A stretch of DNA of 64,000 nucleotides, taken from contig CATNEN010000034.1 of NCBI GenBank assembly GCA_950097015.1, positions 5,890,001 through 5,954,000 of the forward strand. Direction: 5' to 3'. This document shows positions 4,713 to 63,734 of this stretch, one piece after another (within the stretch, counting starts at the first letter, position 1; every line of letters starts with the position of its first letter). A program made the position numbers and the translations under genes. Source of the DNA: Macrostomum hystrix (lineage: Eukaryota > Animalia > Platyhelminthes). Below the pieces are notes generated by a model. That model did not search any database, had not been told where the DNA came from, and saw only the letters and a list, made by a program, of their open reading frames with translations.

Positions 4713-4840
4713 TAAATTGCCTGTTATAATTGTTTAAAATCTCAAATCGTTTTGCAATTTAGTGTTTCGCCTGTTCAAGGTGTGCCTTAATGACATAATC
4801 GAACCCTGTAATTAATTTCTAATCCGCCAACCCCCGCCAG

Positions 4841-12823: not shown

Positions 12824-12931
12824 CTTGCTGCTCTGCTCGGTGTTTTTCTCAGTGCAAAGTTGTCTTTCTATGATTTTATCATTGCTACATTATTTTCCAT
12901 TTGTTCACCCTTGTTCTAAAAATGCTGGTTT

Positions 12932-13455: not shown

Positions 13456-13870
13456 AAGATACTGTCTTTGTCTAAGAGATTTTGGGGAGATGTCAGGCTG
13501 TGCTAGTCATCTACAGCAAATATCTGACAGTCATGATCTGACATGTTAAGCTGAATTTCGGTACATCAGCTTTGATCTGATATATATATCCGATTACTCT
13601 CTTGATTTACTTTTATTGCTTTTCTAAGGTGATAGGATTTTCGACTTGGAATGCTTTATTCTTGACTTGTTTTATGCGACATTTTTGCAGTTCGCAGTGC
13701 AATCGTTGCTAAACATCGATCCAATAACTTAAGAATCAATTATGCCTGATATGTAATATGTCTACTCTCTCCTACGACTTTTATCAAAAATATTTTTGCT
13801 TAAAATTAGATAACTGTTTGCAATCGACGAAACACATTATTATTTAATTGTAATTTGGTTCCTTATGTGA

Positions 13871-41317: not shown

Positions 41318-43623
41318 TTTTGGTTGTAAAAAGTTGTGAGCGCTTTCCATTACTACTGCTCTTGAGTAGACATTGCAGATTGTGAATTGTCTCGATTGTG
41401 TATTAACGTCTAATGAGACAAAATAGCTTGTTGGAAGCATCGCACACAATATACTCGTATTTAAAATATGTAATTATCGACTAAGCACACTACCTGCGTT
41501 AAGTGAAAGCAACGATTTGCGAAGCACCATTTCTAGTAACAAGATTGAGTAATAAAAATCAATTCCCGTAATCTCACGTGCTCGAATGTCACATTGGGGG
41601 GAAGGGGAATCGAAATCATCTCCCAGTGGCAAGCTGCTTCGATGAGTCTGACGAGTTTATTACTCGCACGAGCTTTAAAATAGTCGAGTAAGGAATAACT
41701 GTGCTCACAAGAGCTCGGGCTAAACTGTTGAGAGAGGGTAGAAGGGAAATTCGTCTGCTCAGTGCACCTTCACGGAGCTGGTTCGAGTCCGAGCTTAGCA
41801 GAATCTCTCAAATTCGTATAGAAATGCAAATCGATGAATGCGAGCTGGTCTTTGAGTTGATTCTGTTGCACACAGATCAGCAGCTTACCTACCTTGTATT
41901 TCTTAAACGGGAGTTCAGTGAGAACTTGAACTTCGCTTCCCATCTATTTGTCCTACGAGTATTAGGTTTAGTCCGATTGTCTGAAATTTAGTTTTCGTTA
42001 ATTTTAATAAATATGTTAATTGATTTATGACTTGACGCTTATCTGCGTGTTTAGAACGTCTAGATGGCTTAATTTATTTTTATTCTCTTTTTATTGCATA
42101 ACGCGATAAGCAATTTACGAATTAGCTTTCACTACTAGTACATTGTTTTTCTATCGTATACTCGTGACTAAAGTGTCCGCGACTGCTTCTGGTTTATAGC
42201 GGAGTTGGGGTCGAGGTCGAGGCCCTCGGTCTCGTATAAGTCTGGTGCGGCCTTCGCTGCACCCACCTCACTCCCCCGGCTGGCCCCCTTCCCCGCCCAG
42301 CGAATGTACATTAGCCGTGAGGTGGGCGCCTGTTGGATCAGCTCCTGATCAAAGCCTACTGGTTTATTATAGCAGCTTATCTGTACATTAGATTACTTAT
42401 CTGTTTTCTAGATGCAACGAATCGATCTATCGCAATATAGCTAAGTTAAGATCGAAACCGATATTTTCTCGAATTCGGAACGGCTTCGGATATTTTACAT
42501 TCTCACACAACTGCAGTGTACTGTCAAATTAATTTTAACTTCAACTTCGATTCCGTCTGCTACTAGATAATGTCCTGTACTTTTAATTATATTGCAATAG
42601 TTCCGAAGTGAAATACTCTCCCCGCATCGAATTTTATTTCGACAGCAATCTGCGGTGAGTTGCGCGTCATATACTGATATTGTAGTGACTGCTTATTTTA
42701 CCCGTCTCTTGTGCTGCCGTTTTTAGTGGCACCGCAACTTTCAGAGCCTAGTTTGACCTACGGATGAATGCTAAATTCTTGAATACACTTCGCTCAGGCC
42801 CCTCAGAATTCCGCCAGCCTAATCAGATCACACACTTCCCAGTGTGTGATCAGGTGACCTGCCTGTACGGATTCCGAGATCCCTAGCACACAATTGCTCG
42901 CTCGCATTATTTAAAAGGCTAGGAGCCTTGGGTCTGGCTGACACAGCGACTCAGTGACACTACACAATGCCTCATCCAGCCCCCACCCCAGTCATTTCCC
43001 ATTCTATTCTTCCCTCGGTGAATTCTCAGTTCTCCCAACAACTCAAAAACCTCCAGCCTGCCCTGCTCCTCGTCACTCCCCAACTCCTGCAGAGTCTCTG
43101 GAGTTTTAGAACGAGGCAGGCAATGAGGAGAGTCGGTTCAGGCGGAGGGGGCGGTTGAGGAAGAGGAGCGATTGGGGCCAGCGGGGAAGAAAGGCTAGGT
43201 AGGATCGGGGCTGTGGGGTGGGCATCGGAGACAATGCGAAGCGAGCGGCGAAGGGCCTCGAGGAGGTGGGGATGGGGCTAGGTTGGGGTCTGGAAGGTGG
43301 TAAGTTGGCCAACCAGAGCGGGCAGCACTGGGATCCGGGGCTTGGGGAGGTCCAGACGAATTGGCATTTTCATAAATAAATAAGCAGCCCCCCTGTCAAC
43401 AAGAGGAGACTCACCAGAGAGCTGGCGCGGACCCACCTCAACACAATTCTTCCTGCCCAAATTTCAGAGCCCATAAGAGAGACGGCGCGCAGAGCGGGCC
43501 ATTACCCTCCCAGCACCCGACGCATCTCATCGACAACTTCTCCCACCCATTGTTCGTCCTCAATAATTCAGCCAGTTGTAGCTGTGTCCGGCAGTAACCA
43601 GGCTTCCCAGGCAGCACGCAGAC

Positions 43624-44463
43624 ATGTCCGAGCCACTCACCTGTGCGCCGAGCATACTCACCAGCGCCGCTGTTGGCGGCGGCATCGACAGTCCCAGCAT
43701 TGGCGCCGCCAGCGACGCCACTGGACCGGACAGTCCGGCCTCAGACGCTCTGTCAGTCGTTGTGCCGATGACCGCCGAAGCTTCTTCGCCGGCGCCGCCA
43801 CCGGAGCAGCAGCAGCAGCAGCCGTCGTCGTCAACCCCGCAGCCGACTCAGCCGCATCCGCAGCACGTCAAGTCGCAGGCTAAAAAGTCGTTTGTCTGGC
43901 GCTATTTCACCCACCCGTCTGACGATTCGGGAATGCCCGACATTAAGAAGACCGTTTGCAGCATCTGCAGCGCGGTTCTAGCCTTCAACAACTCCGGCAC
44001 AACCACCACAATGCTGAACCACCTGAAGAGTCGGCACGGCGATGTGGCTCGTCAGGAGGAGGAGCAGAAGCGCGGTCGCGGCGGCGCTCCGACGGTTGTC
44101 AAGGAGAAGACTGGCGGCAAGTCGACGCCCTCCGCAGCTGAGGGCAGCAACCAGACTTCGCCAGCATCTGGGACTGCCGCCAAGCAGGGGCAGCAGCAGC
44201 AGAAGGCCAGCGCTACTGGCGGAGGCAAGTCAACTCCAAGCTCGCAGGCTCAGCTGCAGACAGCGCCGCCGCAGCCTCCGTCTCAACAGGTGCCGCTGCC
44301 GCTAACGGTTGCGGTGAGAGCCGAGCAGCTGCAGGTGCCGTCAGTGAAGTGCGCCACCGAATTCGTCGGCGTTGAAGGCGGAGGAGCAGCTAGGGGCGGT
44401 CGCGTGTCTGGGATCGCTGGCCTACCCTCCCAACAGCAGCAGCAGCAGCAGGCCATTGACAAG
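43624..44463 (+). CDS. ZBED-like gene exon 1: BED zinc finger
   Basis: KKSFVWRYFTHP...KTVCSICSAVLAFNNSGTTTTMLNHLKSRH is a W-x2-F, C-x2-C, H-x4-H BED finger. Donor AAG|gtaggc at 44464. Confidence 0.9.
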
Positions 44464-47400
44464 GTAGGCCACCAACGATTTCGGAAGTCCCGCCCCTCCG
44501 TCCTCGTTCATCCATCCAGTCTTCACAGCCAGTTCTCACCTCCGTCTTGCCTCACTTTCATTTTCTTTCAGCCCTCCGGGCTTTCACTTTTTTGCTCGCG
44601 GATTTTTTAAGCCCCTTTTGCGACATTTTTTTCGGACCTTGCCGCGGCTGAAAGGCGCAAGAGCGCGGGGATCAATCTGTCGAGTCCCTCTCGCAGCAGG
44701 GCCTCCTCAACTTTTGCCTCCAAATCTTCTTTCTTCTATCCATCTTCTCAACCCCCGCCCCTAACTCAGGAAACCCCTACTCAACTTGAGGCTGGCCTCT
44801 GGGACTCATAGTCTTCGTTGCGCACAATGAAGTGTCGCACCGATTTTTTTTCGAAATCCCGGGGCTTGAAATCTTCCCTCCCCCAGCCTTTCCTCTCTCT
44901 CTGCCGGTGTTTAAAGTGGGAATTGAGTTAAGGTGTTTTTTCACCTACACACTCCAAGAGCTTCAATCCCAATGAGGCCCCGGAGCAAGTGCGAGCTTGC
45001 ATTGCTCAGGGGGCCAGGTTTTTACCAAACTTTTTTATAGCCAGAGTCTCGACCCCATTGTTAACCATTCATGACCGCTTTTGGGCTCCAACCAACATTG
45101 ATGAATTGGTCCACCCCCAGTCTTCTTCAATGTGGTGTGTGCACAATAATAGCCTGTCTGCTCGACCCCCTGAACTGCTCAATGCTGCTGCTGCGAGCTG
45201 CATAAAAGAATTTGCAATGAGTTGAATTGCTTTTTTCTCCCCCACCCCATCTTACAACTCCGTCTCCTCTGTCCTCGCTGTTTCGCTCCCCTCCCAATCC
45301 TCAGCTTGAAGGCTTTCTGGTCTCAAGACCCGGAAGTTGCTGGTGCGGCTGCCTATGGATGCGATGCTAGTTTAAACTTAAAATTCCAGAATCGGATTGC
45401 GGGCAATCGGTCCTATTTTTTGAGTATCGGGATCTGGGCTCCTAAAAAAGACCTTAAGAGACTGATGCGAGCGGTAATCACCTTTCATGCGTCCACAGCC
45501 CCAAGCATCAGGCCATTGTGCAGTTGAGTGTTGGATCAGTGTGACAATGACGCATGCAATACTCGCCAGTTCTTATTGTTGTTGATTACTGGGGGAGAAT
45601 TACGAGTATAATCATGGGTCATGTTTTTTGAATTGGAGAATTCTGAGTGTTTTGGTCGGGTGTATTCATATCTTTTTGTTTAAATTATAACACTGAAAAA
45701 AATCGTATCGAATATTATGACAATGGGATAAAGATAATATCGTTTTCGTTACAAGCTCTGTTGCTTTTATTGCTACTATCTATGCGGACTCTTCCACAAT
45801 AGATCATGCAAGCCAAGCTGTTTCCTCTCTCACAGAAAAAATTCAACAGGTGAGAATATCTCATTCGAATCGGCACCTGTTGAAATTGTCCAAAGCTCCA
45901 CCACCACTTCGAATCCTGCCCGAGTCCCGTGTTTCGAAGTTCCCGGTTGGATACTAAAAAATATGAGAATTGTCCCGCATATTTCTTTTTCCGAAAATCC
46001 ACTCAATGTCTCCCGATGGCTAGAATTATTCCCCCCAAAAATCCCAAACTTATCTCCAACCTCATCGCTGGCTCGCTATGGGCTGGGGGATAAGCGAATG
46101 TTTGTCTGGCAGACGGAGAAAGCGATTCCGAAAGAAGCGAAGTTAAAAAAGGACTCAATATGGGAGTCGAGGGTTTAGCTGCATGCGGGAAATTGTTTGG
46201 TGGGAAGAATTTGAAGCGGAGCGAGCGCTTCGAGGAGGGAGGAGTGGCGTGTGGCCTCCGTAAAGAGGCTGAACTGAACGTGTGGGGGTCGAGCGAGCCC
46301 GGAGACGCTGGGGGGATGGTGCGCAAACAGGCGGGATGTGACTGGGAATTGGGATTCGAGAAAAACCGCTGCGGCTTTGTCTACTCCTCATTTCTGCGAA
46401 AATAAGAGAGGCCAGAGGCGGATAAAGAGTTTGCGAACGGAGGAGAAACGCTGGGGGTGGATTGCGAAATCGGCTGCGAGGAATCGGCCCGGGGACAAAT
46501 TGCGGAATTATTATAGAGAAGGGCTTCGCACACGGAATAAGCTTTTCGGGATTAGAGGCGATCGGTAGGTTCGCGGGAGGGGGTGAAGAAAAAACAAATC
46601 GGCTGCCAGAATCTTTCAGGTGCTGTTCCGCCGATTTCCTCACTGGCTGCTCGGTTTTTAGCTAAATAGAGCCACTTAAGAGCGCTGGGGATAATACATT
46701 TTGCTACTGGGACCTGGGATAAGGATTTTGAGGCAGACTCAAGGTTATGCTGTTGACGCCCAAAAGATTCGAAGATTCGAATACTACCTTGTTTAAGATT
46801 TCGAAATCTAGAATGGGATTTTGCGTTTATAATTTCATTTGTCGCAAAAATGTTAGAGCAACACTTTCAACTTCTTTTTCCCTCAGTCTGCACTACAGCA
46901 GCAAATGCAGCAGCAGCAGCAGCTACAGCAGTTTCAACAGCAGCAGCTTCAACAGCAGCAGCAGCAGCAAATCCCAGCTCAGGCCATGCAGTGGCACGCG
47001 GCGGCGGCTGCTGGCGCGGTGGCTCCCCCGTCGACCACTGGCGCGGTGCAAGACTTCTCTGCCCTGTTCTTGCCCAGCCACTGCTTTCCGAGCGCCTTCC
47101 CGCCTCTGGGCAGCCATCTCACCCTGCAGGAGGTGCTCTATACCAACGCCCTGGCTCAGATGTACCCCACAATGGCTCTGGCCAAAGGTGTCTACCGGCC
47201 TGCCAAGCACCACTCGCCAAACAGCTTCGCCGAAGAACTCGGAGGCGGAGACGCCTCCTCCGCCATGGCTGCGCAGAATGCTGCAGCAGCAGCCGCCGCC
47301 GCTGCCGCTGCCGCGGCTTCCGCCGCTAGCAACGCCACCACGGCTGTCAACGGCAGCATCGGCGTCGGCGGCGGTCTGCCAGATCCGAAGCGGGCCAAGC

Positions 47401-50400
47401 GGAAGGCTCCGGCTCCGCTGAGGAAGACCTCCGCTCCGCTGACAGCGACAGGGCAGGCCGGAGAGCCGACACCGACGACAACGGCGGCCAGCGATGGACC
47501 GATTGGAGCGGAGAGATTCGTGCACTTCCTGGCTAGGGATCTGCTGCCCGCCGATACCCTTTATCAGCCTGGCTTTCTGGTAAGCCACAATGCGAAGCCG
47601 CATATTAAAGACTCGATTTTGATCGGGACTGCATTAGTTCACACATCCGGAACACTCCCCCCCACAATGCCACTCTCCCAGACCTCCGTCTGAAAGTCGC
47701 TCTCCGAATTTTTGTTGTCCAGCTGGTTTCGTTCGCTCCCCTACCCGCCCGAGTAATTTCCCTTCTTTGCCTTAGTTCGTTTCTTTCACTAGCCTCACTC
47801 CGCAATTTCTGTCGTCCCTGTCATTCTCTCCAAATGTCCCCAATAAGTCTAGCGTCACGTTGCTCAGCCCCTCACAGCCCGAGTCCCGAGCAGTTCCGAG
47901 CTACTCGCTCGCTGACTCTCTCTCTCTGCCCCCTCCCACTCTTCTGCTTTGCGCAGAAGAAGTTGCAAAGCAGTTGAAATTTGGTCAAGACTCTCCCTCG
48001 GCGGTGCGACGGCTGTCAATTTTTTATGCTGCTGCTCCTCGACCCCCCCCTAGCTGACTGGCTGAACACAAAGATTGTTAATCTCTAAATTCGAACTCCT
48101 CCGACAGCGGCTGTGGCGGCGCTTGCTTTCTAACTTACCTTCCTGAGCAGGGGGAACTCGGACTCAAGGCCATGCCCGAATGCCAGCATGTCCCCCTCTA
48201 ACCAACCCAGCTGTGCCCAGCCTGGCATTTCATGCGCACTCAATGCATGCGCCGGTCAGAGCTTCAAACCCTCGTGACAGCTGATATCCCATTTAACCGA
48301 GTTATGCGGGCAACCCGAGTAATCCCTAGCTGAGGTACCCAGCCCACACCACCTACCGCCTCATTTAGTTCGATCTGATCCTATCCGATGGCTCGGGATT
48401 GTGTTGAATCCCACAAAATCCGCTGACCACCCCACCCCACCACCACAAAGCCTTCTTTGGAAGCAATGAGGATCGGAGTCGTCTATTTAGCCGCTAATAT
48501 TGGAAGATAGGTAGCTGTTGCAACTAGCTCTAGGTGGGGATTTCGCGGCCAAGACCTCAGCAACTCGAGCCCGCCAGGGGGGGACGAAACTTCTGTTCCC
48601 CTTCCCCCTCGCTCCCCTGACCTCCCGCAAAGCATTTTTCTTAACTCCTCGATTTCCTCTCCGAGGAGACTTTATTCTCTCTACCTCTCATTCTCTGCAG
48701 CCGCAGAATTAGGTAACGCCGGACAGTTTTTTGTGTGCGGCTTTAGAGAAGTTCGATTTCTGCAATATGGCGCCCTCCCCTACTCAGCCCTGCCAGCCCC
48801 AGCGGGGGTCTTAATCAACAGGAGCTGCCGGGGCATACTTAATACAGCATTGGAGAAGGGGAAAGGTTTATATTACGGAGGGAATTGGGGGGGCACCAAT
48901 TGTTCCCCTCCGCTATGGGGTTCACTTAGCTTGGTGAACTGCAGCGGGAGCTTTAGCCGGCATTTTTAATACCCACCGTCAACTGCATAAATATGAGCTC
49001 AGTGTGCTCAGAACTCGGACTCGTTTCGCTTCCCTTAGCCACTTCGGTGGGAGAAACGAGTGGAGCATTTTTTCTGCTTAGCTTGTGTGTGTGTGTGTGT
49101 GTGTCTGTGCTCCCAGCTCGCGAAATCTGCTGCCACAACTGGCCACTTTGCAAACAATACGCGATTCGACCCTTAGTCCTCTTCGTCGGCCATGGGGTTT
49201 TTCTGCAATGCCTTCCCCCCACCGCAGTCTGCTGCTGCTGCTGCACAGCGAACGCTCGAGCGAGAATGGTGTTTGTGTGCTGGTCCCAACCCGGCAGTCG
49301 AGTCCCAATCTCTCATTTTCTTTCTCCCAGACTTGCATTCTGCGGATACTAATCGCTGCTGTTTTTGGTAGGTCGCGGAGCAGGGCAGGGGGATTGGCTC
49401 ACGAGTGGGTTCTCGAATGAGTCCACCTGCCCACACCTCCGCTGCCATAGCCGTCTAGTTCAGGCTTATTTCGGCCAGTGGAAATAAAATGATTTCCTAA
49501 CAGCAAAAAAAACTCAGCGGGTTCGGTGGTGGCCGCATTGAACAGAACTGGCTATGTATTGAAGGCAGAAAAAGTTGGGATTTACTGCACCTGGATTTAT
49601 GCAACCAGCGGGGGTGCCGCTAATTGCATTGTGTGGCGTATGCCTGCACTCCGCACCTACCAAAACAGCGTTTTTTCATTTTTCGTAGAACTCATGCTTG
49701 CTCGTGAAGTCCTGAGCACAACAAAGCCAAAGAGCTCACTGAGTCAGCGGAGGGTCCGTATCACCGATCACCAACGATTCCGTCATTCACTGACCCTTCG
49801 CTTCATGTTTTACCATCCACTCCATGCATAAAATTCTCCCCATCCGAGTCCGGCGCTATCCTCCCCTCTCTGATCACTGAGTAACTCCCATTTTCTTCAG
49901 TTTTTTGAGAAGCTGGAGCGGATAGTGGGGCCAGCGGGCCTTCCTCGGTCCATTGACGGACGTGCGGGCGGGCTCCGCGGACAGATGGACGGATATGCAG
50001 CCTGACTGTCTGTCTCGGGACTGCCCCCTTCTCGACTCTCTCTCTAGTTCTCTCTCGCACCTTCATTTTTCATTCTGGCGACACCTTCTTGTTCTCTCGG
50101 GCGGGGGTTCTTCCTTCCTCCTTAGCCGAAAACTCGTGTCCGCGGCCCCTCCCGGTCTCGCAACTCCGAGGTAGAAATGCTCAACTCCTTCTCCCGCTTA
50201 GAGTTATATAGCAGCCATGTTCCTTCAAATTCTTACCCCTTCTGACCACCGTTTTCGATACCGACACAATGACCGAAGATTTAGGCTGGGGAGAAATATT
50301 AGTTGGAGTCGGTGGGGTGGCAGAATATATGAGTCTGCCATGTGAGTTGTTGCAAATTTTCGATATTTTTAATGCGGGCGACTCGTGCTCCACTGACTCA

Positions 50401-53400
50401 GTTGTTTGGGATTGAACTACCAGCAGCAGCAGCAGCATTGCAGAATGCGACAATGGGCTAGGGGGGAATAGGGAGAAATAAAAGCATACAGGTGGCTATA
50501 CGATCCCCTATATTGATGCCGCCATCAAGGTAAGAAACTCGGATTCTAGCTCGGGCTAGTAAGTGAGGATATGGGGGAGCAAACAATGAGAAAGTGGGGA
50601 TGGCGGAGATGAGGCGGGAAAGCTCGGCCGTGGTGGCAGCTCATATTTGTCAGATTAATGGCTTCCCACATCCACAGCCCCGGGTTCGGGCCGCTATTAT
50701 GCGGCCGACAATTGCTTCAGCAATATGGTTCCGAAAAAGCGATTTGAAAGCGAAGGCCTTATTAGCTCGCGCTAGGACCCCACCCGGCCCTCCTTCCTTT
50801 ATTTAGTTTCTTATTCTCCTGCATTTATAAGGCTTCTCAAATGAATGTGAGCACACACAATCACACGCGCAGAGAGGGAGAGAGAGAAGCAAACTCGAAC
50901 AAGGTGTGAGCCTGAGAACACAAACCGGCTGTTTCAGGCAGCCTGGTGGGTTTGACTGGATTAAGAATTGAGCGGACGCCTGCCCACCCACACAATGAAA
51001 CTTCCCCAGGTTTCCAAAACCGCTGGCAGTCCGATATCTCACAAAACACCAGCTTTGTTGTTCAATCGAATGCAGGTAGGGGAGGCGGTTTTGGCCCGGC
51101 CAAGCCATTTCTCCCTCTCTTTCTTACTCCGTGCTATTGTTTGCTTTGCGGAAACTCGAGCGGCCCACAGTTTCAGGGCCAGCAAAAGAGAGAGAGAAAG
51201 ACTGCCCGAAGGCTGCTCCAGTGCGGCAGTCCAGCTTAAAGAAGACAAGGCGGGGCGCCGCTGCCGCTGCCGCCGTCGGCGCCGCCGCAATTTCTCTGTC
51301 GAAGCATCGCATGCTTCTGGTTGTGGGATGAGGGGGCTAGTCCAGTCTTAGGGAAACAAAAGCTATATGGCTGGCTTGGTGGCTGAATTCAGCATGGGAA
51401 TGGGGCCTCGGTGTGTGCGCCGTGTTGTGTGTCAAACTGCCAGCCCGTCCGTCCTAAGTCCGCCTGTGTTCCCTGGCCTCCATTGCTCCTCATCCGCCTA
51501 GTCCCGGCCATTGTTGCCTTATCGACTTTGCCGCGAGTGGAACAGTAGAGAGAGAGAGAGAAGGAGAGGATGAGGAGAGAAGGCCCAGAAGATGGGAATG
51601 GATTTGGCAGAAAAATATTTTTGGGGGGAGGCGAGCGAAGCAGTTGCTCACTGCTTTTTTTCTGCTCAAGTTTTGTTTGAATTTGAAAGAAAGTCGACCC
51701 AGCGGCTGGCGGCCTTCTCGCAGACCGGCGACCCCCCCCGGGTCGACCCGCGATGAGTGAATGTGAAGTGAGTTATTGGGAAGCTTGGGAGAGAGGTAGG
51801 CGTCATCACTCATCAACGCACCCCCCACGGGCTCGGATCGAAGCGAGCACGCGCGCCGAGGGAAATTGAGGGAGGAGGTGGAGGAGCGGAAGGTGAATAA
51901 AGAGGTGAGAATAGCGATGGCGGAGCTCCGGCGGCCGCGGGAGTCTTGACAGGCCCCGGCCCCGAACGGTGTGTCTTTTTTTGGGGCGCATTTCCCGCCA
52001 CCGGGGACTCCAAGAGGCTCCGCCGCCGAGCCAGGCGCGGCAGGATATGGGACGTCAAGCGGCGCTGCTGCGGCAGCTCCCAGTTGGGGAGGGTGGGGGG
52101 AGGCCAGAGTCGGGAGAACAGAAGAAGTGGACGCCGGTCGAAAAGTCGACGTCGCGGTATTGGGATCTGGTGTGGCCTAGCAAAGTTTCGTTCCCCTCCT
52201 CATCCCTCATTCTTTCTTCCACTTCTTCGCCTCTTCCAGCGGGGAATTTTTTTCCTACCTCACCCTCTCGGCCTTTAATTGGGTATTTGATGCGAGTACA
52301 AAAGGAGAGAGAGGGTAAGAGAGAGGTGAGACTCGGATTTCAGCTGCGGCCTACTCGGCAGCGATCGCATTCCAAGCTTCTGAATGAATGTTTGGTAGAG
52401 CAGGCGCCGGTTACTCCTTGAGTTAGTGGGGCGGAGGCAGAGAGCCTCATAGAGAGGCGAACGGTGAGTTTGAGGTGCGCTGAACGAGATCGGTTAGAAT
52501 CGGCCTATATAAACGGCCGAGTCTAATCGAGTTATGAAGCTCTAGCATCCCCAGTATAGGCTCGGATTACCCTGGCCCGGCCCAACAACTCCGCCAAGCT
52601 CAGAAATCATACGGTCGCATGTGTGTGGGGGGTTCACCTTCCTGTGTGGAAAGCTGGGCATGGAAATTGGAATTGGAGGCTGGCGGACTTGGATTGGGGG
52701 GGGCATTGTTGCATTCGAGCCGGCCTGTGCACCTTCTGGCAATTGTGTTTGCCTCTCCGCGCCATCCACTCGCCTCCGCTCTTTCTTCCCTTACAAATCT
52801 TCCCATCTCCCACCCTACCTGGTGTTGGCTTTTAATGAAAATCAACTTTCCCATCCCATTTCGGCACCCACCCCAGCTGAACAGGCACGAGTCAGTGTTC
52901 AGTGCCCTCGGCACCCCAAATCTTATATCCTTCCTTTCATCTCATTCATCCTTTCTGGTCTAAGCTCTGTGGGTCGCCTGCACCGGTTCCTGCCTTCAGC
53001 TCGGCTGTCAAATATTGCTCCCCAAGCCGCCTATTATTCCCAACTCGCAGCTTTCTGAACGCTCGGCCTCGACCTTGTGGCGGTCGATTCGGAAATTGAG
53101 CTCTCTTCCTCTCTCCCTCTCTCTTTGCTCTAAAAATGTGAAAGAAAAACATTTGACGCCGCTGGAAATATTCCGAACTTCTTCACGAAACTTGTAAAAA
53201 CGAAAAAGCAGCTAAAAATTGTTTTCCAGGAATCGAAATAGACATTGTTAAGTGAGAAGCGTATGGCGCACGAAGTTGGATCCGCAGGTTTTGGCTACTT
53301 CATTACTTATTTGTCGATGCGTGAAGCCACTTGTTACTTTCCACTCTTTGGCCTCTTTTTATTCAACAACTTTGCCTGGCAGTTTTCAAGACCGACAGTT

Positions 53401-56400
53401 CTGGAACAATTAGGCGAACAGTTTTTGAGTGAGTCTTCCAGACAGCAGCGGAGAAGACAATGGAAGAATGGGTGGGGTGGGTGGCCGAGGCTCACTGAGT
53501 GCTGGTGTTGAGAAGAAAGGAAATGTTTGAGACGAAAATTTCCCAAAAAATCCCTTTAAAAATCGTCAAGTTGTTTTCTTGCATCCAAGCGTGGCGCCCA
53601 GATGCCACACAAGTTTGGGAACAAAAAAATTATTGGTCATTTCAATTCCCGTATTCCATCCACTCCACGCAGCGAAATGAAAGCATTTTCCTACTCCCGC
53701 CTGTCTATTCCTCTTTCATTGAATGACTTGAGCAGCAGAGCTGGAGAGAGCACACAAAACTTGTTGCCGCCACAGCCAAATTGTTTTGCCTTTGTGAGTC
53801 TCCCCGGCTGGTTAATCGGCAATTCATCTGACAGGAGGAATGTCAAATTGTTTGTCGCACCGGTGGCTCATTGGTTAGGGTGGTTGTCTGTGTTTCTGTT
53901 CACAGACACGTTTCTGCTTGAGCAGCCTCGAGCTGCTCTGTAGGGGTGGCCGAGGTCGGCCTTGCGTGACGCTGAGCAGTTTGATGCGGCTGACAATGGC
54001 ATGGCTGCAGGTCTGTTTCTGGTAGAGAGAGGATGAGAGGGGGCGGGGAAAACTTTCCGAACCTGATTATTCCCGACTTGGTAGGCCTGGAGGCATGGCG
54101 TTTTTTTTGCGCGGGCAGCAGTGGCGAGGGACAGAAGTTTGAGATGGGGATAAAGGAGTTTTTGAAAAAGCTGCCGGAATGCCGGCCTCGCTTCCCACCT
54201 GCATGCGGCATACAATGGCGTGCGGGTGCGGGGGGGTGGCAGCTCAACTCCCCGGGATGATGAAGTGACGGCCGCGACCCCTCCCCACTCCTCGCTGGCC
54301 GCGGCTCCAGCCACCCAGCCGCCGCCGCCGCCACAACCGCTGCTGCTGCTGCTGCGGCCGATTCCCCGAGACCATGGGGGTCCGATGAAGTAAAACAGGC
54401 CCCCACCCAACCCCCGTAAAACTTTGAGTAGGCGGGATGAGGCCTGCGAGAGGACGCGGATAGACACGGGAGATGAGAGCGGGTGCGGAGTTGAAGTGAG
54501 GGCAGGCGGGACTCGTAAAGCTCGGATCCCTTAGCAGGGCTCGCGACTCGGCTGGGGGGTTGCAGGCTCTCATGATGAAGCTCTCCGGGTGGGTGGCGGA
54601 GGTTAGGGGGATTCTGGGAAGAGCCCGGTCTCCCATTGTTCACCGGGGCCGGGTGGCATTGTGTGTGGCTGAGGGCGGCAGCAGCAGCAGCAGCAGCCCT
54701 ACAGGTAGAGATAATTAGGGAGAAATAGAATTACTGCTCAATTATTCATGCGGCCCCGGACCCGGGACTGGAGCTCGCGAGTGGCCCCGGACCAGCCAGC
54801 GAGAGACAGAGGGAGTCGGGGCAGTTTTGGAGAGGAACTGAACTTGAGTCCCCCTCCCGCATTGTGTTGTTGTTGCGCCGGCCAGATACAATTTGGGCTG
54901 CAGTTGCGTATTTCTCTGTCTCAGTCTTGCATGCCTGCAACAGGAGGTGCGGAGGTGGCGGCGGCCGCGTCGGCGGCGGACGGCAGAAATTTTGGGAAAA
55001 GCTCCCCCCGCTGAGCCCGGCTCGACCCTGCAGCCAGCTGAATAGCCTCTCCCCCCCTCTCTCTCTCGCGTTTAGCTATCAAAAGCCTTTGGAAAAATTT
55101 CCAAACCTAACAGCCTGAGACGAGCAACCGCCGCGGGTTCTCTTTGGAACAAAAGCTTTGCAACTTTGCTGCTGCTGCTGCTGCTGCTGGACGAGGAGTT
55201 TGAAAAAAAGTTGCGGGTAGTCCGGTTGAGCTGGGACTAGTTCAGCTTGGAATTCTATTCCTCCAGCGAGTCATATTGCCGCTTTCTGCAGGTGGGCTGG
55301 TTTGCGAGCCTGTTATTGCTGCATGAGAGAGAGATGGGCCTGTGGCAATTTGGTTTTTATTTCATTCCAACTTTTTATAATATAGTCCGGCCTTTGAAGC
55401 TGAGCTGTTTTGAGACGATGTTTGGCTGAGGAAAGAATAATAAAAATTGAGTCCCAGGATTTTCTATATAGCCTCAATTACTCCCTGAGTTCCTGGCGAA
55501 TCCCCACTATTATAGCTCGACCGGGTCTCATGCCCGGAGTTGTTGCCATAAAAAATCCCCCCATTGCTCCAGTCGGCCGGTCGGCTCTCTTCGCGCTCGC
55601 TCGCTTGACTGGTCGCACGCGGCCGACTCTCTCTATAGCCCCCCTACCTCCATTGAGCACCTGCTTGGTTCGCAATTGTTAACACTCGCTAGCATTGTAT
55701 CATGGCTTGCTGACACTCGCGCAGTGTAGCATTTCAGATCTCCGGGACTTGACTGGAACAGGAAAGACCCGACCCGCACATCCTCACTTTGGGGTTGGGC
55801 GGCGCTGATGCTGGAGTCACACGGAACAATTTGCGATGCTGAAACGAGTCGCTTGCATCGGGGATGGCCCGAGGGGGGTTGGCGTCTGGTTAGGCTATGC
55901 CAAGTCAGGTCTATAGGTGGGACGAAGAGGATTTGAGAAAAGCAGAAGGTGGAAAAGGTTCTGGTAGACGTATCTCACTCTCTCTCTCCGCCCCCCTTGT
56001 CTCCGGATTCCGCAATTCTTCCTCCTTCCTCGAATGGCAGGCCCGAGCGAGTGACTGTTGAGTAGGGTACGCACAATGCCCGTCAGATGACTTCCCACTT
56101 CCCTCGGGGGGGAACGTGTGGTGGAAGAGACATCGGAGGAACAGAATGGAAGGGTGTAAAGAACAAAGAATTTCTGTTATAGGGGCCGCTGCTGCAGTTC
56201 CCACGGCCCGCTAGCAGTCTCGAAAACCTCCTTTCCCTCATCTCCCCGGCCCGCAGCTTCCCTCATTATTGTCCGCTCGTGGCTCGGCGGATCGCATTTT
56301 TTAATGGCTTTTACCTTGCACCCCACCCTGCCTGGCCTTATTTATTCGCAGCTCACGAAAACTCAAAACATGCACGCACCCAGGCTTGACTCAGACAAGC

Positions 56401-59400
56401 AGCTTCCAGACACAGCGAGGACTTCGGGCTTACCCCGCGGCTTCGGATATTGGGGCCCATTGTCCGCAGTTTTTTTATTGCCTTCCTAGCGACAACTGCT
56501 CAATAAAAATAGCTTGTGACAAATGATAGATTGCTTGCTCAGAACCGCAGCCTCGCCTGCTTTCAAATCGAATCTAATTGAGCTGCGATCTCAACACGAT
56601 TATTGAAACTTGAGCAGCTAGTCTAATTAAACAGACTAAAAGTCTCACACACGACCTGGCGATCTCAGATACTCTTGTTGTTGGGAGTTTTTTCCTCTTC
56701 ATGTCTGTCCCTCTCAGTTCGCATCTGACATGAAAAAAGCAACCATTTTTTTTGCTTTGGGATCGCCCATTCAAAGGAATGCCTCAGTGGTGACAGCGAA
56801 ATGTTGAGAAGAGAAACGGGATACGGGACGCCTGCAGTCTCAAAGGGGATGACAGTTGATTAATCCAGTCTCGGAGTTATTGAATCGCTCGAACTAAGCT
56901 GGCGAACATTGGCAATAAAAAAACACAGCATTGAAGAACAATGCAGGAAGCGGTGAAAAATTGTTTTCGTCTGATTCCTACATTGCCGACATCCCACTGA
57001 CAATGACAGGCAAGTCACCCCCAGGCCCTTAGATATCGATTTACCTTGCCGCACCTCAAAAGCCGCTTTGCTCAGTTATACCATTATTCCCAAACCACCT
57101 CCGACCCAAAAATGTTCCTCCCCACACCAAATTTTTTTCGATCGAGGTCGAAGGAAGTTTTTCCCAGTTTTTGCTCAATGGCTTTGAAACAAAGATTTGA
57201 AGGAAAGCTGATCCGCCTGCTTGCAAGTGCGCGGCCGTCCCCCTGGATTCTGCTTCAGCTTCCCTTTTGTGCTCAACTGTGCTCAAGCACCTCTGAGGGC
57301 TGAGTTATGGGAAATCGGATGGGGAAGGCAAGGCCTCCAAAGGGATTTGCTCCCGGCCGAATTTAAAAGCCGGGAGGTGTGAATTGAGTGGAAGAAAATG
57401 TGTGTTTGTTTGCTAGTTGCAAGCAGTTTTCACTTTCAGCGAGTCAGCGAGGAAAGAAGCAATAGAAGAGGCCTGTGGTGACTGCATTATCGATTTGACT
57501 TGCAACTCTCTTCTTCTCGCGCAGTGGGTTCGAGACGCTGGAGTAGGGGGTTGGCAGGCCCTGGGGGGACGCTGTGTGGAGCTGAAATGGGATTAGGGAA
57601 TTTTTGGGACAGACGGAGCTTAGGGGCAGGCTGAGGCAGCAGCTTGTGTGGCAGGGGAGGTTGGGAGGATAGCTTGAGACTCGAGCGAAACAATGCACTC
57701 GCCAGTGGGGACGGGTCTATTGTGTTTCAGAGTCGGAGGAGGAGGGGAGGCTGGCTGCGCGGCAGGGGGTTGGCGCTACGAAGGGCCTGGTTGGCAGTGA
57801 CTGAAGGCTCCTGCTAGAGCGGGCCGCCCGCGGTGGCTCCTGCTGACACCTGTGCGCGCCGCGGGCGGAGGAGGCTGTGCGATGTCGGAGATGAGGGCGC
57901 GACCCACCACGGGGGGGGGGTTGGGCGGAACGAGCGGGAAGAAATCGATTGCTAGAAGAGGTTCTGGCCTGATGAGAACGAGAGAGAGAGTGTGAGAGCT
58001 TCAGCACCGGTGGTAAAAAAGCTTGGCGCCCTTCAGGCCGGTCCTGTGGGGATCTGGAATTCGGGGAGCTTTTTCAGCTACGCCTCGTTGCTCTGCCACT
58101 ATCCCCTACATCGAGAGTTTTTTCTGACTCCCGCCCTCGTCTCTCCTTCCCAGCCTCTCGCTCGGTCATCGACCTCGTCAATTCATCGAAATTCGCGCAG
58201 CTGACTCGAATGCCTTTCTATGAAAAATGAAATGGGTAAAAAATCCCCCCTCAGAACAACAAGAGAGCGCTAGAGAAAGGTGGGTTTAGGGGAGAACAAT
58301 GAGCACAGCACTGGGGGGAGTGGAACAGATCGACTCCAGGTGGAGACACGGTGAAATAGCGGCTTGGATCTCCGAGTGCGGCCGAGGGGCTGCTCAAGCA
58401 GGGGCGCCGCAAAGTCCCGCTACTCCAGGGTCTGAGAGGGGAGTGACAGGAAGCTCTCGCCAGCACCCGCGTGAACGCGCCCCCTGTCTTCTGGGTGAAT
58501 GGGCCGGGGGCCCGCACTGTTTGTTCAGGTAATCATTCAGCCTCCCCTCCCTCCCCCGTCCAAAACCGAATTCGCGCCGCCGCCTCTCCTCGGTGCCTCT
58601 TCGGGTCCCGCGCTGCTCCGGAAATCAGCTCCGCTAGGGGGGGTGGAACAATGGGAACAGAATCCTCTCATGCCCCTGGCCGCCACTGAAGCCCCCCGGG
58701 ACAGCGGCGAACAATGGCTGACTGGGGGGAAACGAGGCTTTCAAGGGGAGTGAGCGGTTTTCAGGTCGGGGGATCGAGTCGCGTTCCATTCTCCCCCTCC
58801 CCTGCCACTCGTCCTCTCGACCCGGCCCTTCTCCCAGTCCTCGAAAAAAGACCAAAAATAAGCCTTTCTCCCTAGCCACAAAGCTGGATGGGCGGGGAAC
58901 AATGACTTTCGAGTGTTGGCATAGGAAAGAGGGGGACTATAATTGTGTCACAAAATTCCGGTGGAAGGGGAAGTGGCAATTTTTTGCGAGGCATTTTGGA
59001 GTTAACCGGCTGACAGGGTGGAAAGGCTTAGAGACAAGTGAATGAGTGAGCACACGAGCATGGTATCAGCTGCTGGTTCCCTTCACTCACCTCAGCAGGT
59101 CTGGCAAATGCTCATTATCCCTGCCCTCCCCTCCACACCAAAGCTATTCAATTCCAGTTCCCGTTTCGCCAGACTTCGGTTTGGCCGCTTGACACTTGAG
59201 AGAGTTAGAGAGAGAGTGAGTGAGCTGTCATGGTGACAAAACTCTTCGATGCCTTGGGCGCAGTTTCGGTGTCGTCTGCGGAACGCTGATTTTTTGCTCC
59301 GCAGTCTGTCCCACGGGAGTTGGGAGCGCGGGGAGAGGGGCGGGAACAACAGTGAAACTAAGGAGAGCTACTTCCTGTTAGTGGCACCAGCGGATTTGCC

Positions 59401-62400
59401 GACCCTTCGGCGCGCACGAGTGCCTTGAGAGGGTTTGGTAGATCGTGTGTTTGTCCAGCAGTTCCGCTTGATTCAGTCTGTTCCCTAACAGTCACTAGCA
59501 CTATCCACTCGCATTCAATAGGCATTGTTGTGTTTTTCGCATCGCATTGTCTCAGCTTGAACCTTGGCTAGTTCCGTGAACGGATGAACTTTTTCCGGAA
59601 GTTTTATTGTTTCCCGCAATCTTCGAGTTTTATTGTATGACCTAAGAACCGTCCATTTTATTAGCTACTCAAATAAGAGAATAACTTACAATGATATTTC
59701 TCTCACTGTCATTCACTTTCATTCTATCTTGTCACTCTTCGAAAACTAGTCACTCGTGTCATTCTATCTAGTCACTCTTGTCATTCTATCTAGTCACTCT
59801 TGTCATTCTATCTAGTCACTCTTGTCATTCTATCTAGTCACTCTTGTCATTCTATCTAGTCACTCTTGTCATTCTATCTAGTCACTCTTGTCATTCTATC
59901 TAGTCACTCTCGTCATTCTATCTAGTCACTTTTGTCATTCTATCTAGTCACTTTTGTCATTCTATCTAGTCACTCTCGTCATTCTATCTAGTCACTCTCG
60001 TCATTCTATCTAGTCACTCTTGTCATTCTATCTAGTCACTTTTGTCATTCTATCTAGTCACTCTTGTCATTCTATCTAGTCACTTTTGTCATTCTATCTA
60101 GTCACTCTTGTCATTCTATCTAGTCACTCTTGTCATTCTATCTAGTCACTCTTGTCATTCTATCTATTTAGTCACTCTCGTCATTTAATCTAGTCAATCT
60201 TGTCACTCAAATCAATCCTATCGTTACTCAAACTACTCAAAATCTTACAATAACAGTCGCTATATTCTCCCCTTCATTCTCCCTGCACAGCGTCTGGTGC
60301 AGAGCCTGTCGCCCAGGTGCGAGCCACCGAACCGGCAGCGCCTGCTCGACCAGCTGCTGCCAGCGGCCCTAGCCACCGAGCAGGCCGCCGTGAAGGCCGC
60401 CCTGATCGGCGGCGTCCCCGGAGTTCGTGCCTTCTCAGCCGAGGTCTGGTGCAACCGGGCCGGCGTCAGGCTGCTCACACTGCGCGCCTTCGTGCCGCAC
60501 GAGGCCTCCGCTCAGGGACAGCAGCAGCAGCAGCAGCAGCAGCAGTCTTCTTCGTCAAAGTGCCGCGTTCTGGAGACGCGACCGGTGCGTATAAAAAAGT
60601 GTATTTTTTCCTGCTTATCTGAATCTGTTTGACTTATCTTGTCCACCTGTCTGAATCTGTCTGTCTTATCTTGTCCACCTGTCTGAATCTGTTTGACTTA
60701 TCTTGTCCACCTGTCTGAATCTGTTTGACTTATCTTGTCCACCTGTCTGAATCTGTTTGACTTATCTTGTCCACCTGTCTGAATCTGTTTGACTTATCTT
60801 GTCCACCTGTCTGAATCTGTCTGTTGATCATTATAACTCATCGTTTTCTCGCAAAAAAGCTGGAACGATTCGCTTCTCGGCGTATTTAATCTACGAGCTA
60901 TTTGTGCTCCTACCTTGATTTGAGCCTGGTGCAAGGGCTATTGTGAAATGAGAAGCTAAGGAAATTATTTTTATAGAAGAATCTAACTTTTCTGTATGTG
61001 TGACTGGTCGGGGAGTCGGTGGGCCGATCAAAAGGTGTGTGGGATCAGGAGATGAGAGGCCGATGAGTCTCCATTGAGGCCTGAAATTTAGAATAAGAGA
61101 AGAGGATAAAACTGGCCTAAAGAGATCCCAAGTTTTCTGAAAAGGAGGAAGCGAAGAAGCGTAGCTCGAGGATGATGGAAGAAGCTTGTCAGCCAGGAGT
61201 GGAGACCGGGCCGAGCCTTCAAGCTCCGACAGGAAAAGCTTCCACGGACGTCTTTTCAAGTCGGAGAGGCCGGTGACAATGAGGCCGAGTTCCGCTCTCG
61301 AACAATGAATGGAGCGCCTTCCACGCCATTCCTACCCCCTTCTCCGTCTGCCTTCTCTCTTTCTGTCTCCTCTCCTCTCTGAGGAATTTCAAGTCTACTC
61401 GATCCTCGCCACTGTCTTCCTTGCTCCATTGACTCAAGCGGCGGCAGCGGACGCCGGGAGTCGCTGGTGACTGGCCTGAAATGAATTTATCGGTCGCCAA
61501 GGGATTGTAGCCAGCTTCCTTTTCAAGTTATTATATTCCCCATTCTCCTCAGTCTCCGGGGCTGTTCCTCGCAGGTTGAAGATCTCTTTTTCTTAGTCAA
61601 GTCACGACACTCTGTTAACTGATGAGCCCCTGCCTGATCCTAACGGCCTGCCCGCATCTTGCATGAGTATAGCTCGCGATTTTCCTTGAAGCCTTCGCTG
61701 CCTCTATTGTTGAGGATTTGTCGGATCTGAGGGGGGGCGCTTCGTGCGGCGGCTGCAGCCGATCGCCATTCTGTCGCCAGGGCGCTCCTGACTTCATTCC
61801 GCTGGGGCGACAGGGATTTAAGAGGAATAGTTTGGGAGAATCGCGGGTGATGAAGCATCTCCGAGCCCAATGACTGCTGGTAGGGTCTCCCCCACCCCAA
61901 GCTGACTCAATCGACTTGACAACCGCCGCCTGAGCAGCTGAGTTATTGCACCTTAAATCGCATCGCGACTTTGAACTCAAATGGGGGATGAACGGGCTAA
62001 GCATAGCTAGTCAGCAACTGAGTTTATTTCTTCTCTTTAAACTATTTTTTCACGCAATTTTCTTGAGGAACGTAAATTTTTCTGAAATTCATTAATTTTC
62101 CGGATTTACGTGTTTTTTCGTGAAATCATTAGATTTTCCGGATTTATAGGAAAATTTTCAGATTTGACGCAAATTCTCCGGATTATTAAAGATTTTTTTG
62201 CCCAGACTTTTTCATTGTAATTTTTACTTTGCTATTTTATAACGTATTCTGCGGATACTGCATTATGTACAAGATATTTTTTAAAGCCGCTAACAGTCGC
62301 TGGTACTTTGTTTGAATTTTTGCACTACAACATCTAACCGATACTAAGAGTCATAAAATCCCAATGCCCCGCATTTGGCAGCTACCAAACCTGGACCTGC

Positions 62401-63734
62401 TGGCTTCCACCTGTTTGGAAATCATCTCGGCCTACACAGAGTCCCAGCTGCCGCAGGATTTTCTTCCCATCGTCTGCAACCGGCCGGCTGAGTTCGTTCG
62501 CCAGTTGCAGCAGGCCAACCAGAACGGCGTTCACGACTCCATCGACAAGATCATCATCGTGCCCTGCCTGCGCACCGCAATGTGCCGCGCCGTCAGCGAG
62601 GCTCTCGTCGAGTCCACAGCCTGTCAGGCGCTGCTCCGACGTTGCAGCCGCCGGCACCGGCGAAGAATCCTTCGAGCCGAACGGCGTCGGCCAGACAGTC
62701 GGCTCCATGCTGCGATGACGGCTGCGGACCAGTCGCCGCTGCCGCGGGCAAAAAAGGCTGACGTCAATTGCAACGACTTAGAGGAGGACGATGAAGAGGC
62801 GCAGCAGCAGCAGCGTCCAGCGGCGACGGAGGCGGATTCAGAGGCCGCCACTACAATCGCCGCCGAGGACTCCGGCATGGACGTTGACGCGGACTGCGAC
62901 TCCAACGATGCCGAAGACATCGATGATGACACCGAGGATGGCTGGGAGTCGGCTTTGGCCGATCTGCAGCGTGTCACCGCCGTCGACACCATCACCAGCG
63001 ATGCCGGCAAGTCGTCGATGTCGCCGGATGAGCTCCGCTCGGCCCGCGAGCTGTGCGCCGCTCTTGTCCGATTTCGCGACCACCTCGACCGGCTCTTCTC
63101 CGGCGCCTCGGTGTCCTCATCTGGCAGCCTCGGCCAGGCGCTGCCGGCGGTTCGCGAACTGCCAGCCGTCCTGAGGCAGCCGGCTTCTTCCTCGTCGGCC
63201 CAGGCGTCTGATCCGGCAGTTGAAGCTCTGGCCGAGTTGGCTGGCGAACGCCTTCTGTCTGTTTATCGCAGTCCCGATAAAGTCTGGCGCCTGGCCCAGC
63301 TGGCCGCGTTCCTTCAGCCGCGCCTGCCGCTGCCATCGGAGTCGGATCGGCGCTCGGCGGTGGCTCAGCTGGTTGAGAAACAGCTGGCCGAGGAGGCCGG
63401 GCACATCAGCCGGCGCAAGCGCAACTCGCTTGTGGTCCAGCAGAATCTGGACCAGGCCAGGAAGTCCGTGGAAGACGAGGCCAGACGCTATGAGGCCTTG
63501 CTGGTGAGCTCTGGCTCCGCGGCGCTGACTGGCTCGGCCACGGCCCAGTGGTGGTCGTCGACTGCGGACCGGCTGCCAACGCTGGCCAGCGAGGCGCGCC
63601 TTCTGCTGCACATCCCGGCCAGCTGCCTGCACGTCCAGTCGCCGCTGGGACTGGCCGAATTCTCGGCGAAGCGGGCCCGCCTGCCCGAGACTGAGCTCAA
63701 CGCCCTGCTGGCACTGCACCAGAGTCTGGCTTGA
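43624..63734 (+). CDS. ZBED-type protein: BED zinc finger, catalytically degenerate hAT transposase core and hAT C-terminal dimerisation domain (putative domesticated transposase), 4 exons, ~1059 aa
   Basis: join(43624-44463, 46887-47579, 60291-60584, 62382-63734); all GT-AG phase-0 introns; 3180 nt. The hAT motif order is continuous across the splice junctions (…DLLPADTLYQPGFL|RLVQSLSPRCEPPNRQRL…). Confidence 0.82.
46887..47579 (+). CDS. ZBED-like gene exon 2: polyQ/polyA region, NLS-like PKRAKRK, start of the hAT N-terminal dimerisation region
   Basis: Acceptor cttctttttccctcAG and donor CTG|gtaagc. ERFVHFLARDLLPADTLYQPGF matches the hAT pattern I..FI..D..P...V...GF. Confidence 0.8.
59745..60200. 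repeat. Intronic minisatellite, 22-bp unit CTATCTAGTCACTCTTGTCATT, ~20 copies
   Basis: Directly visible tandem array ending about 90 bp before the exon 3 acceptor. Confidence 0.95.
60291..60584 (+). CDS. ZBED-like gene exon 3: start of the hAT RNase H-like core
   Basis: Acceptor ttctccctgcacAG and donor CCG|gtgcgt. LSPRCEPPNRQRLLDQLLP...VKAAL...AFSAEVWCNRAGVRLLTLRAF corresponds to hAT L.P.Y..PSR..L...LLP...SLTTD.WTS....YL.VTAH. Confidence 0.8.
60615..60823. repeat. Intronic minisatellite, 32-bp unit CTGAATCTGTTTGACTTATCTTGTCCACCTGT, ~6.5 copies
   Basis: Directly visible tandem array starting about 30 bp after the exon 3 donor. Confidence 0.93.
62382..63734 (+). CDS. ZBED-like gene exon 4: degenerate hAT core and C-terminal dimerisation domain
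   Basis: Acceptor gcatttggcAG. IVCNRPAEF (for VTDNA.N), VPCLRTAM (for CxxH), DGWES (for TRWNS), then WWSSTADRLPTLASEARLLLHIPASC...KRARL (hATC-type). Stop TGA at 63732-63734. Confidence 0.82.
   Translation, partial: LPNLDLLASTCLEIISAYTESQLPQDFLPIVCNRPAEFVRQLQQANQNGVHDSIDKIIIVPCLRTAMCRAVSEALVESTACQALLRRCSRRHRRRILRAERRRPDSRLHAAMTAADQSPLPRAKKADVNCNDLEEDDEEAQQQQRPAATEADSEAATTIAAEDSGMDVDADCDSNDAEDIDDDTEDGWESALADLQRVTAVDTITSDAGKSSMSPDELRSARELCAALVRFRDHLDRLFSGASVSSSGSLGQALPAVRELPAVLRQPASSSSAQASDPAVEALAELAGERLLSVYRSPDKVWRLAQLAAFLQPRLPLPSESDRRSAVAQLVEKQLAEEAGHISRRKRNSLVVQQNLDQARKSVEDEARRYEALLVSSGSAALTGSATAQWWSSTADRLPTLASEARLLLHIPASCLHVQSPLGLAEFSAKRARLPETELNALLALHQSLA

Follow-up and report, generated by a model that had tools for sequence, protein, structure and literature searches.

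A hAT transposase-derived host gene with large introns in Macrostomum, probably turned gene regulator

New regulators have come repeatedly from domesticated hAT/BED genes, as in ZBED1/DREF, ZBED6 and SLEEPER. Here we describe a gene of this descent, which appears uncharacterised, at positions 43624-63734 on the forward strand of a 64,000-nucleotide stretch of the flatworm Macrostomum hystrix (GenBank assembly GCA_950097015.1, contig CATNEN010000034.1, positions 5,890,001 to 5,954,000; hereafter the window, in whose coordinates positions are given). Among described proteins, its product is matched best, by profile and by fold, by the Hermes transposase of Musca domestica (PDB 2BW3, 4D1Q, 8EDG), whose RWNS tryptophan and WW..P..L..IPAS tail align with it. 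The active site of Hermes consists of D180, D248 and E572 plus a CxxH motif (C265/H268). Hermes transposes between terminal inverted repeats (TIRs), whereas the gene in the window has no TIRs, carries three introns and occupies a fixed locus.

The domesticated relatives are closer in organisation. ZBED1 and Drosophila DREF, which are host genes with introns like this one, have an N-terminal BED finger, an inactive hAT core and a C-terminal hAT dimerisation region in the same order, the last with a putative counterpart in the flatworm product; sequence similarity to them is nonetheless marginal, and the flatworm product differs in its long poly-Q/poly-A linkers, its length of about 1059 aa, and a core into which an Arg-rich plus acidic segment is inserted. 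ZBED6 and other vertebrate ZBED proteins are likewise transposase-derived and are sequence-specific regulators that act through their BED fingers under purifying selection. ZBED6 is intronless and located inside an intron of ZC3H11A, whereas the present gene has large introns of its own with conserved non-coding blocks, and its known range is the flatworms. In plants, DAYSLEEPER/SLEEPER is described as a domesticated angiosperm hAT that has lost the hallmarks of transposition and combines a BED-type finger with a hAT dimerisation domain (PMC3499209). The family is plant-specific and goes back to a separate domestication event, and no close similarity to the present gene is detectable.

Gene structure, transcription and selection

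Four proposed exons, each stop-free in translation, add up to 1059 codons (280+231+98+450), and all three introns (2423, 12711 and 1797 nt) have GT..AG ends and lie in phase 0, since every exon but the final one has a length divisible by three (Table 1). The splice sites read AAG/gtaggc...cctcag/TCT for intron 1, CTG/gtaagc...tgcacag/CGT for intron 2 and CCG/gtgcgt...ttggcag/CTA for intron 3. After an in-frame TAG, the first ATG comes at 43624, and a search of the 64-kb window found the gene in single copy. A preliminary description, made from the letters of this DNA, had proposed exactly such a frame, with four exons, phase-0 introns, about 1059 aa, no stops and one intron of 12.7 kb, and all of this holds.

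Words of exon 4 are present at 85-99% in four sequencing runs (X1 to X4) from a single study. When contigs of these runs were mapped to 42300-48200, coverage was confined to 43426-44423 and somewhat beyond, and to 46885-47579; it was zero in intron 1, 5' of 43426 and 3' of 47579. In two contigs (X3 record 20 and X4 record 25), the genome match breaks off at 44423, at the border of a CAG run, and resumes at 46885 after exactly 38 letters; the mapping skips CAG runs, and Logan contigs break at other CAG runs too. These 38 letters equal the length of 44424-44461, and an AG is common to 44462-44463 and 46885-46886, so that both contigs fit the junction 44463^46887. In all four runs, moreover, the genome match of one contig (X1 record 8, X2 record 16, X3 record 23, X4 record 30) ends exactly at the donor at 47579 and is followed by 243-267 unmatched letters, a length that agrees with exon 3 as far as the CAG run within it (60519-60545). 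The last junction, 60584^62382, is read across by two M. lignano proteins, P0001 and P0002, as ...VLETRP/LP.... The gene is thus transcribed and spliced as a host mRNA, with an indirect case for the join between exons 2 and 3. By motif reading, the end of exon 2 (...FLARDLLPADTLYQPGFL) and the start of exon 3 (RLVQSLSPRCEPP.RQRLL) would together form the usual hAT N-terminal motif, and conservation with M. lignano starts at 60288, three bases ahead of the exon 3 acceptor. Of the three junctions in the preliminary description, 44463^46887 agrees with two contigs, 60584^62382 is matched by the M. lignano proteins, and 47579^60291 has indirect support only.

Three further apparent joints in this region (43698>46901, 44210>46900 and 46969>47224) were discarded as repeat artefacts, as their 21-letter sides lie within CAG runs. 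At the 5' end, X1 record 1 carries 26 letters unmatched to the genome before 43436, and another contig starts collinearly at 43426; the mismatch may reflect a trans-spliced leader or else an artefact of assembly.

The locus can be followed into a second species. Contig NIVC01001753.1 of M. lignano (L001) carries exon 3 at 7386-7673 and exon 4 at 12291-13655, with the same codon boundaries and GT..AG sites as the window. At least 14 collinear blocks link window positions 52736-58964 and 61173-61307 to L001 positions 88-6721 and 9725-9850, and this collinearity beyond the exons marks the locus as an orthologue, or at the least an ohnologue. The M. lignano gene model is partial because L001 ends 7.4 kb upstream of exon 3.

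Between the two species, exons 3-4 gave a dN of 0.167, a dS of 0.95 and an approximate dN/dS of 0.18 by the Nei-Gojobori method (NG86; dN and dS, nonsynonymous and synonymous divergence). Values were 0.06-0.10 for conserved core segments and 0.25-0.55 for the Arg-rich plus acidic insert, and the maximum-likelihood estimate was lower still than that of NG86. Mismatches at first, second and third codon positions numbered 14/8/41, 8/4/35 and 17/6/67 in three exon segments and were evenly spread in the intron blocks. The four runs differ among themselves at five coding sites, all of them synonymous third positions (5/5). An inverted-repeat scan of 40000-64000, which leaves a downstream flank of 266 nt, found only CAG/CTG runs and no TIR pair. 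Selection, the collinear locus and the synonymous differences together exclude a decaying transposon copy. These data support the domesticated, intron-containing gene of hAT origin that had been proposed from the sequence, and support its being immobile, expressed and under purifying selection: a ratio far from 1, an orthologue with identical exon boundaries and collinear intron blocks, and the lack of TIRs all bear the proposal out.

The two M. lignano proteins call for a comment on their records. P0002 is BOX15_Mlig000368g3, a partial sequence. P0001 (UniRef A0A1I8I5Z1) carries the source name 'RWD domain-containing protein', and Pfam finds in it neither an RWD domain nor any other; a fragment of this hAT-derived gene seems to have been misnamed in annotation. 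An exact look-up of P0001 returned no entry on record. Downstream of the gene at the M. lignano locus lies a Peptidase_C97.

hAT descent and the catalytic positions

Searches and folds were queried with single exons or with the natural M. lignano proteins. The Pfam zf-BED model matches exon-1 residues 91-138 at 29.8 bits, above its cut-off of 20.6, and upholds the BED finger read from the sequence; Dimer_Tnp_hAT (PF05699), the second family that had been expected, is the top family at the exon-4 C-terminus and stays below its threshold. When a Macrostomum profile was run against all PDB sequences, the first four matches were Hermes (E 0.021-0.036). Two collinear stretches are involved: GWES...LQR aligns with TRWNS...LRS, pairing its tryptophan to W319 of Hermes, and AQWWSS..RLPTL....LLHIPAS aligns with Hermes 541-600 (E 0.02-0.04). 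In a language-model comparison, exon 4 and P0002 had hAT/ZBED clusters as their neighbours without exception (scores 0.91-0.93).

Structural comparison, made with low-confidence models, points the same way. The ten best PDB matches of the P0002 model in Foldseek were all Hermes chains (E 0.025-0.3). Against 48,161 representative chains, VIA-align gave the exon-4 model a single match with Z>=8, namely Hermes 8edg_A (Z 9.3; 192 residues aligned; root-mean-square deviation 5.4; model 3-304 on Hermes 219-429), and the runner-up, a coiled coil, reached a Z of 5.7. The predicted RNase-H-like core is broken by an all-helical insertion domain, as in Hermes. Taken together, these lines of evidence establish the hAT descent of the gene. 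Protein searches had a narrow yield: an exhaustive HMMER search with exon 4 found nothing beyond P0001, word-index searches with exon 4 or the Macrostomum profile found nothing beyond P0001 and P0002, and no hAT-core homologue was retrieved as a protein outside Macrostomum in either kind of search.

The catalytic residues of Hermes have largely been replaced. At the position of E572 (SERTFS), the HMMER alignment, with numbering checked on full-length 8edg, places the Gln of HVQSPL (codon 63636-63638). At the position of D248, the fold alignment (offset 3 to 219) places the Cys of LPIVCNRP (codon 62475-62477), which is followed by a conserved Asn; this offset puts exon-4 C32 on D248 provided that no gap lies between. 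By the motif reading D-x-W, the position of D180 corresponds to the Glu of FSAEVW (codon 60441-60443), and, again by motif reading, the CxxH motif corresponds to PCLRT (62565-62576), in which the Cys is retained and the His is replaced by Thr. Where Hermes has D, D and E plus CxxH, the present protein thus has E, C and Q plus CxxT. With non-acidic residues at two of the three DDE positions, the enzyme is very probably inactive, in agreement with the catalytically dead transposase of the preliminary description. P0001 and P0002 of M. lignano share the E and the C, and the Q is also present in P0002, the only one of the two that reaches that far; their CxxH region reads PCLHA. Since the residues are the same in both species, the enzyme would already have been inactive before the two Macrostomum lineages split. 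The matching piece in a cestode-like contig (L004) reads PIVTNQP and IIIVPCMFNAL.

Distribution in flatworms, conserved intronic blocks and surroundings

A protein search with exon 1, limited to proteins of 154-490 aa, so that longer full-length orthologues (~1000 aa and more) may be hidden, returned 13 proteins. The named ones come from Schistosoma, Paragonimus, Clonorchis, Opisthorchis, Echinostoma and Dibothriocephalus, and the other matches are Logan, NCBI and MetaClust records. An alignment of the BED finger from 14 sequences (Macrostomum, trematodes, a cestode and further records) has 34 invariant columns, with the pattern KKSFVW.YF.HP...G..D...T.C..C...LAFN.SGTTTTMLNHLKSRH, and 37-44 of the 68 core residues are the same as in the window.

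At three loci, the BED exon is followed on its 3' side, on the same strand, by an exon that ends in the exon-2-end motif, with a donor directly after GF+1. The motif is FHYRLAYFLIRDFHPPRILEEEGFK in S. bovis, about 10 kb 3' of the BED exon; LDYRLAYFLVRDLQPPEVLNETGFK in O. viverrini, about 15 kb 3' of it and with an E of 4e-10 to the schistosome peptide; and AASFLIRDIHPPEMLDGEGFK in L004 (E 1.6e-9). Because the BED finger and the exon-2-end motif occur together in Macrostomum and in parasites, the architecture of BED finger plus hAT N-terminus is older than the split between Macrostomorpha and Neodermata; by the same token, the domestication is old and spans much of the phylum. The preliminary description had called the gene lineage-specific, which proves too narrow: the BED finger, accompanied at these three loci by the exon-2-end motif, also occurs in flatworms of trematode and cestode type. 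L004 contains, in addition, a collinear exon-4-like piece (tblastn E 0.24, weak alone), and a hidden Markov model (HMM) of the Macrostomum core, run against six-frame translations of seven parasite loci, had its top, marginal match in the same contig (E 1.9). These matches suggest that Neodermata may possess the whole hAT core.

The trematode BED sequences fall into two groups, KACAKKSFVWKYF[RH]HPE and K.G.KKSFVW[KR]YFFHPE, which suggests two putative trematode paralogues. On contig KL596620.1 of O. viverrini, the BED exon peptide occurs twice in identical form, at 3143-3349 and 10280-10486, 7 kb apart; the sequence was either duplicated locally or misassembled.

Conservation between the Macrostomum species is also high outside the exons. 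Blocks within the introns have been kept despite an exon dS of about 0.95, and one of them, in intron 2, contains 68 nt that are identical to L001 positions 2363-2430 and include TAATTA-type motifs (Table 1); at synonymous sites, the same two species are near saturation. Hidden exons in intron 2 were considered and ruled out by the absence of codon periodicity and by indels that are not multiples of three, and an Rfam scan of 43000-64000 found no known RNA family. The blocks are candidate enhancers, with 54698-54765 as a candidate enhancer core, and they are a likely reason why the intron stays large. To our knowledge, descriptions of such conserved non-coding elements in flatworms are few.

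Within the introns, exon 3 has a tandem array on either side, one at 59746-60205 (22 nt x 20.7 copies, 94% identity) and one at 60618-60820 (32 nt x 6.3 copies, 97% identity). Elsewhere in the window, an open reading frame (ORF) at 4849-6225 (+) contains a nuclear-hormone-receptor ligand-binding domain (25.6 bits), and another at 36312-37349 (+) encodes an inward-rectifier K+ channel in full (IRK and IRK_C, E 4e-68); the region is ordinary gene-bearing DNA. A cluster of long overlapping ORFs on both strands at 16570-19715 gives repetitive Pfam matches without an aligned stretch (DUF3106, Trp_repressor) and is probably a low-complexity or repeat region.

Table 1. Positions of the hAT-derived gene and its parts in the window
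Feature	Position	Strand	Remarks
5' untranslated region of exon 1	43426..43623	+	RNA-type contig starts at 43426-43463; in-frame TAG at 43579
Exon 1, coding part	43624..44463	+	280 codons; S/A/Q/P-rich; holds the BED finger
BED zinc finger core	43882..44037	+	KKSFVW to HLKSRH; ligands C112, C115, H133, H138
Intron 1	44464..46886	+	2423 nt; GT..AG; RNA-contig coverage zero
Exon 2	46887..47579	+	231 codons; poly-Q and poly-A tracts
Basic stretch in exon 2	47385-47411	+	PKRAKRKAP; resembles a nuclear localisation signal
Exon-2-end motif	47511..47579	+	ERFVHFLARDLLPADTLYQPGFL; read as hAT N-terminal motif; donor directly after GF+1
Intron 2	47580..60290	+	12711 nt; GT..AG; conserved non-coding blocks at 52736-58964
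68-nt stretch in intron 2	54698..54765		Identical to M. lignano L001:2363-2430; TAATTA-type motifs
Exon 3	60291..60584	+	98 codons; predicted first strands of RNase-H-like core
Intron 3	60585..62381	+	1797 nt; GT..AG; conserved non-coding block at 61173-61307
Exon 4	62382..63734	+	450 codons plus TGA; rest of predicted RNase-H-like core, Arg-rich and acidic inserts, helical insertion domain, C-terminal tail
Acidic run in exon 4	62877-62939	+	
Trp of GWES	62943..62945	+	Paired with W319 of the Hermes RWNS motif
hAT C-terminal dimerisation-like region	63546..63725	+	Exon-4 residues 389-448

Rival readings and proposed function

The explanation that fits best overall, and one that we regard as likely, is a single-copy host gene that arose from a hAT transposase, no longer transposes and acts as a regulator. 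Several other readings of the locus were weighed against it. The loss of catalytic residues and the weak Pfam score of the hAT tail would also be expected of an immobilised, decaying hAT copy whose frames stay open by chance; this is scarcely credible given the strong purifying selection with its third-position mismatch bias, polymorphisms that are only synonymous, spliced expression, intron positions and a collinear locus conserved in M. lignano, the lack of TIRs, and a BED finger conserved across the flatworms sampled. Nor is it at all probable that the core retains some DNA processing through an altered active site, in the manner of Kat1 or RAG-like recombinases. The first acidic position is a conservative Glu, and the protein retains a Trp that corresponds to Hermes W319 as well as the Cys of CxxH. 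In both Macrostomum species, however, Cys and Gln occupy the D248 and E572 positions, and CxxH lacks a conserved His. We also count against residual activity the case of Kat1 itself, a domesticated hAT that is reported to keep its catalytic function (PMC4763223). Somewhat less remote, and still improbable, is an arrangement of two genes, in which exons 1-2 would be joined to another 3' exon and exons 3-4 would belong to a separate transcript that starts from the 12.7-kb interval. The junction 47579^60291 is unseen, both M. lignano models begin at or within exon 3, and the interval contains long conserved blocks. However, each of the four runs uses the 47579 donor, with overhangs that fit exon 3 up to its CAG run, and the phase-0 boundary between exons 2 and 3 falls midway in what reads as one continuous hAT N-terminal motif. 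At its conserved 5' edge, exon 3 lacks a start codon, conservation there beginning at the acceptor (60288); the intron blocks show neither codon periodicity nor a restriction of indels to multiples of three; and the end of the contig 7.4 kb upstream of exon 3 explains the partial M. lignano model.

A different question is whether this domesticated gene shares its origin with a known one, that is, whether it is a divergent flatworm orthologue of the ZBED1/DREF lineage and the product of an ancient shared domestication. The nearest solved BED finger is that of human ZBED1 (2CT5, E 0.063), ZBED1-like clusters are among the nearest language-model neighbours, and the domain order agrees with ZBED1/DREF. 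Against this, the ZBED1 match is weak and no better than that of a generic BED consensus, and ZBED4-like, plant and fungal hAT clusters score equally with the ZBED1-like ones; only flatworm proteins passed the exon-1 search (154-490 aa), and no ZBED or DREF sequence was among the matches listed in the protein searches. We therefore consider this orthology unlikely. The opposite and broader proposal, of a flatworm-wide hAT domestication separate from ZBED1/DREF that yielded a regulator set among ultraconserved intronic enhancers, as is the case for key developmental or stem-cell regulators, we hold to be possible, if doubtful. Were it true, the BED finger would have changed little between Macrostomum and the tapeworm- and fluke-type sequences, and the gene would encode a flatworm-specific transcription factor common to parasites of medical importance.

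If the gene is a single domesticated unit, as we favour, its domain content outlines how the product would work. The N-terminal BED zinc finger would bind DNA, probably at one specific motif, because its recognition surface is invariant across the flatworms sampled. The basic KRAKRK stretch of exon 2 (PKRAKRKAP) probably mediates nuclear import; the poly-Q/poly-A linkers and the acidic insert may be activation or interaction regions; and the remnant of the transposase core, together with the C-terminal hAT tail, would provide an oligomerisation scaffold in place of a nuclease. On this view the protein, as a dimer or larger multimer, would regulate transcription or chromatin, as do ZBED1/DREF and ZBED6, a function that we infer from domain content.

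Some observations weigh against the reading of an expressed, hAT-derived regulator. The four runs were taken as RNA-derived from the contig layout over 42300-48200, their run type carrying no RNA record, and the junction 47579^60291 was never seen directly. The dN/dS values are approximate because dS is near saturation. At the exon-4 C-terminus, Dimer_Tnp_hAT scores 15.8 bits, under its cut-off of 21.4; the AlphaFold models, built on shallow four-row alignments, have low mean pLDDT values of 45.7 and 51.5; and the Foldseek matches of the exon-4 model were non-significant, with Hermes at ranks 3, 7 and 33 (E about 1). The assignments of D180 to Glu and of H268 to Thr come from motif reading, with no tool alignment. 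Finally, a literature search on a flatworm BED/hAT gene found no paper on this gene.

The gene is thus a new but unsurprising case of a transposase turned probable gene regulator. The 34 invariant BED columns shared by free-living and parasitic flatworms suggest that the DNA target is fixed and the role an important one. Macrostomum lignano is amenable to RNA interference and transgenesis, and the function could be tested in this species and the results then transferred to schistosomes and liver flukes.

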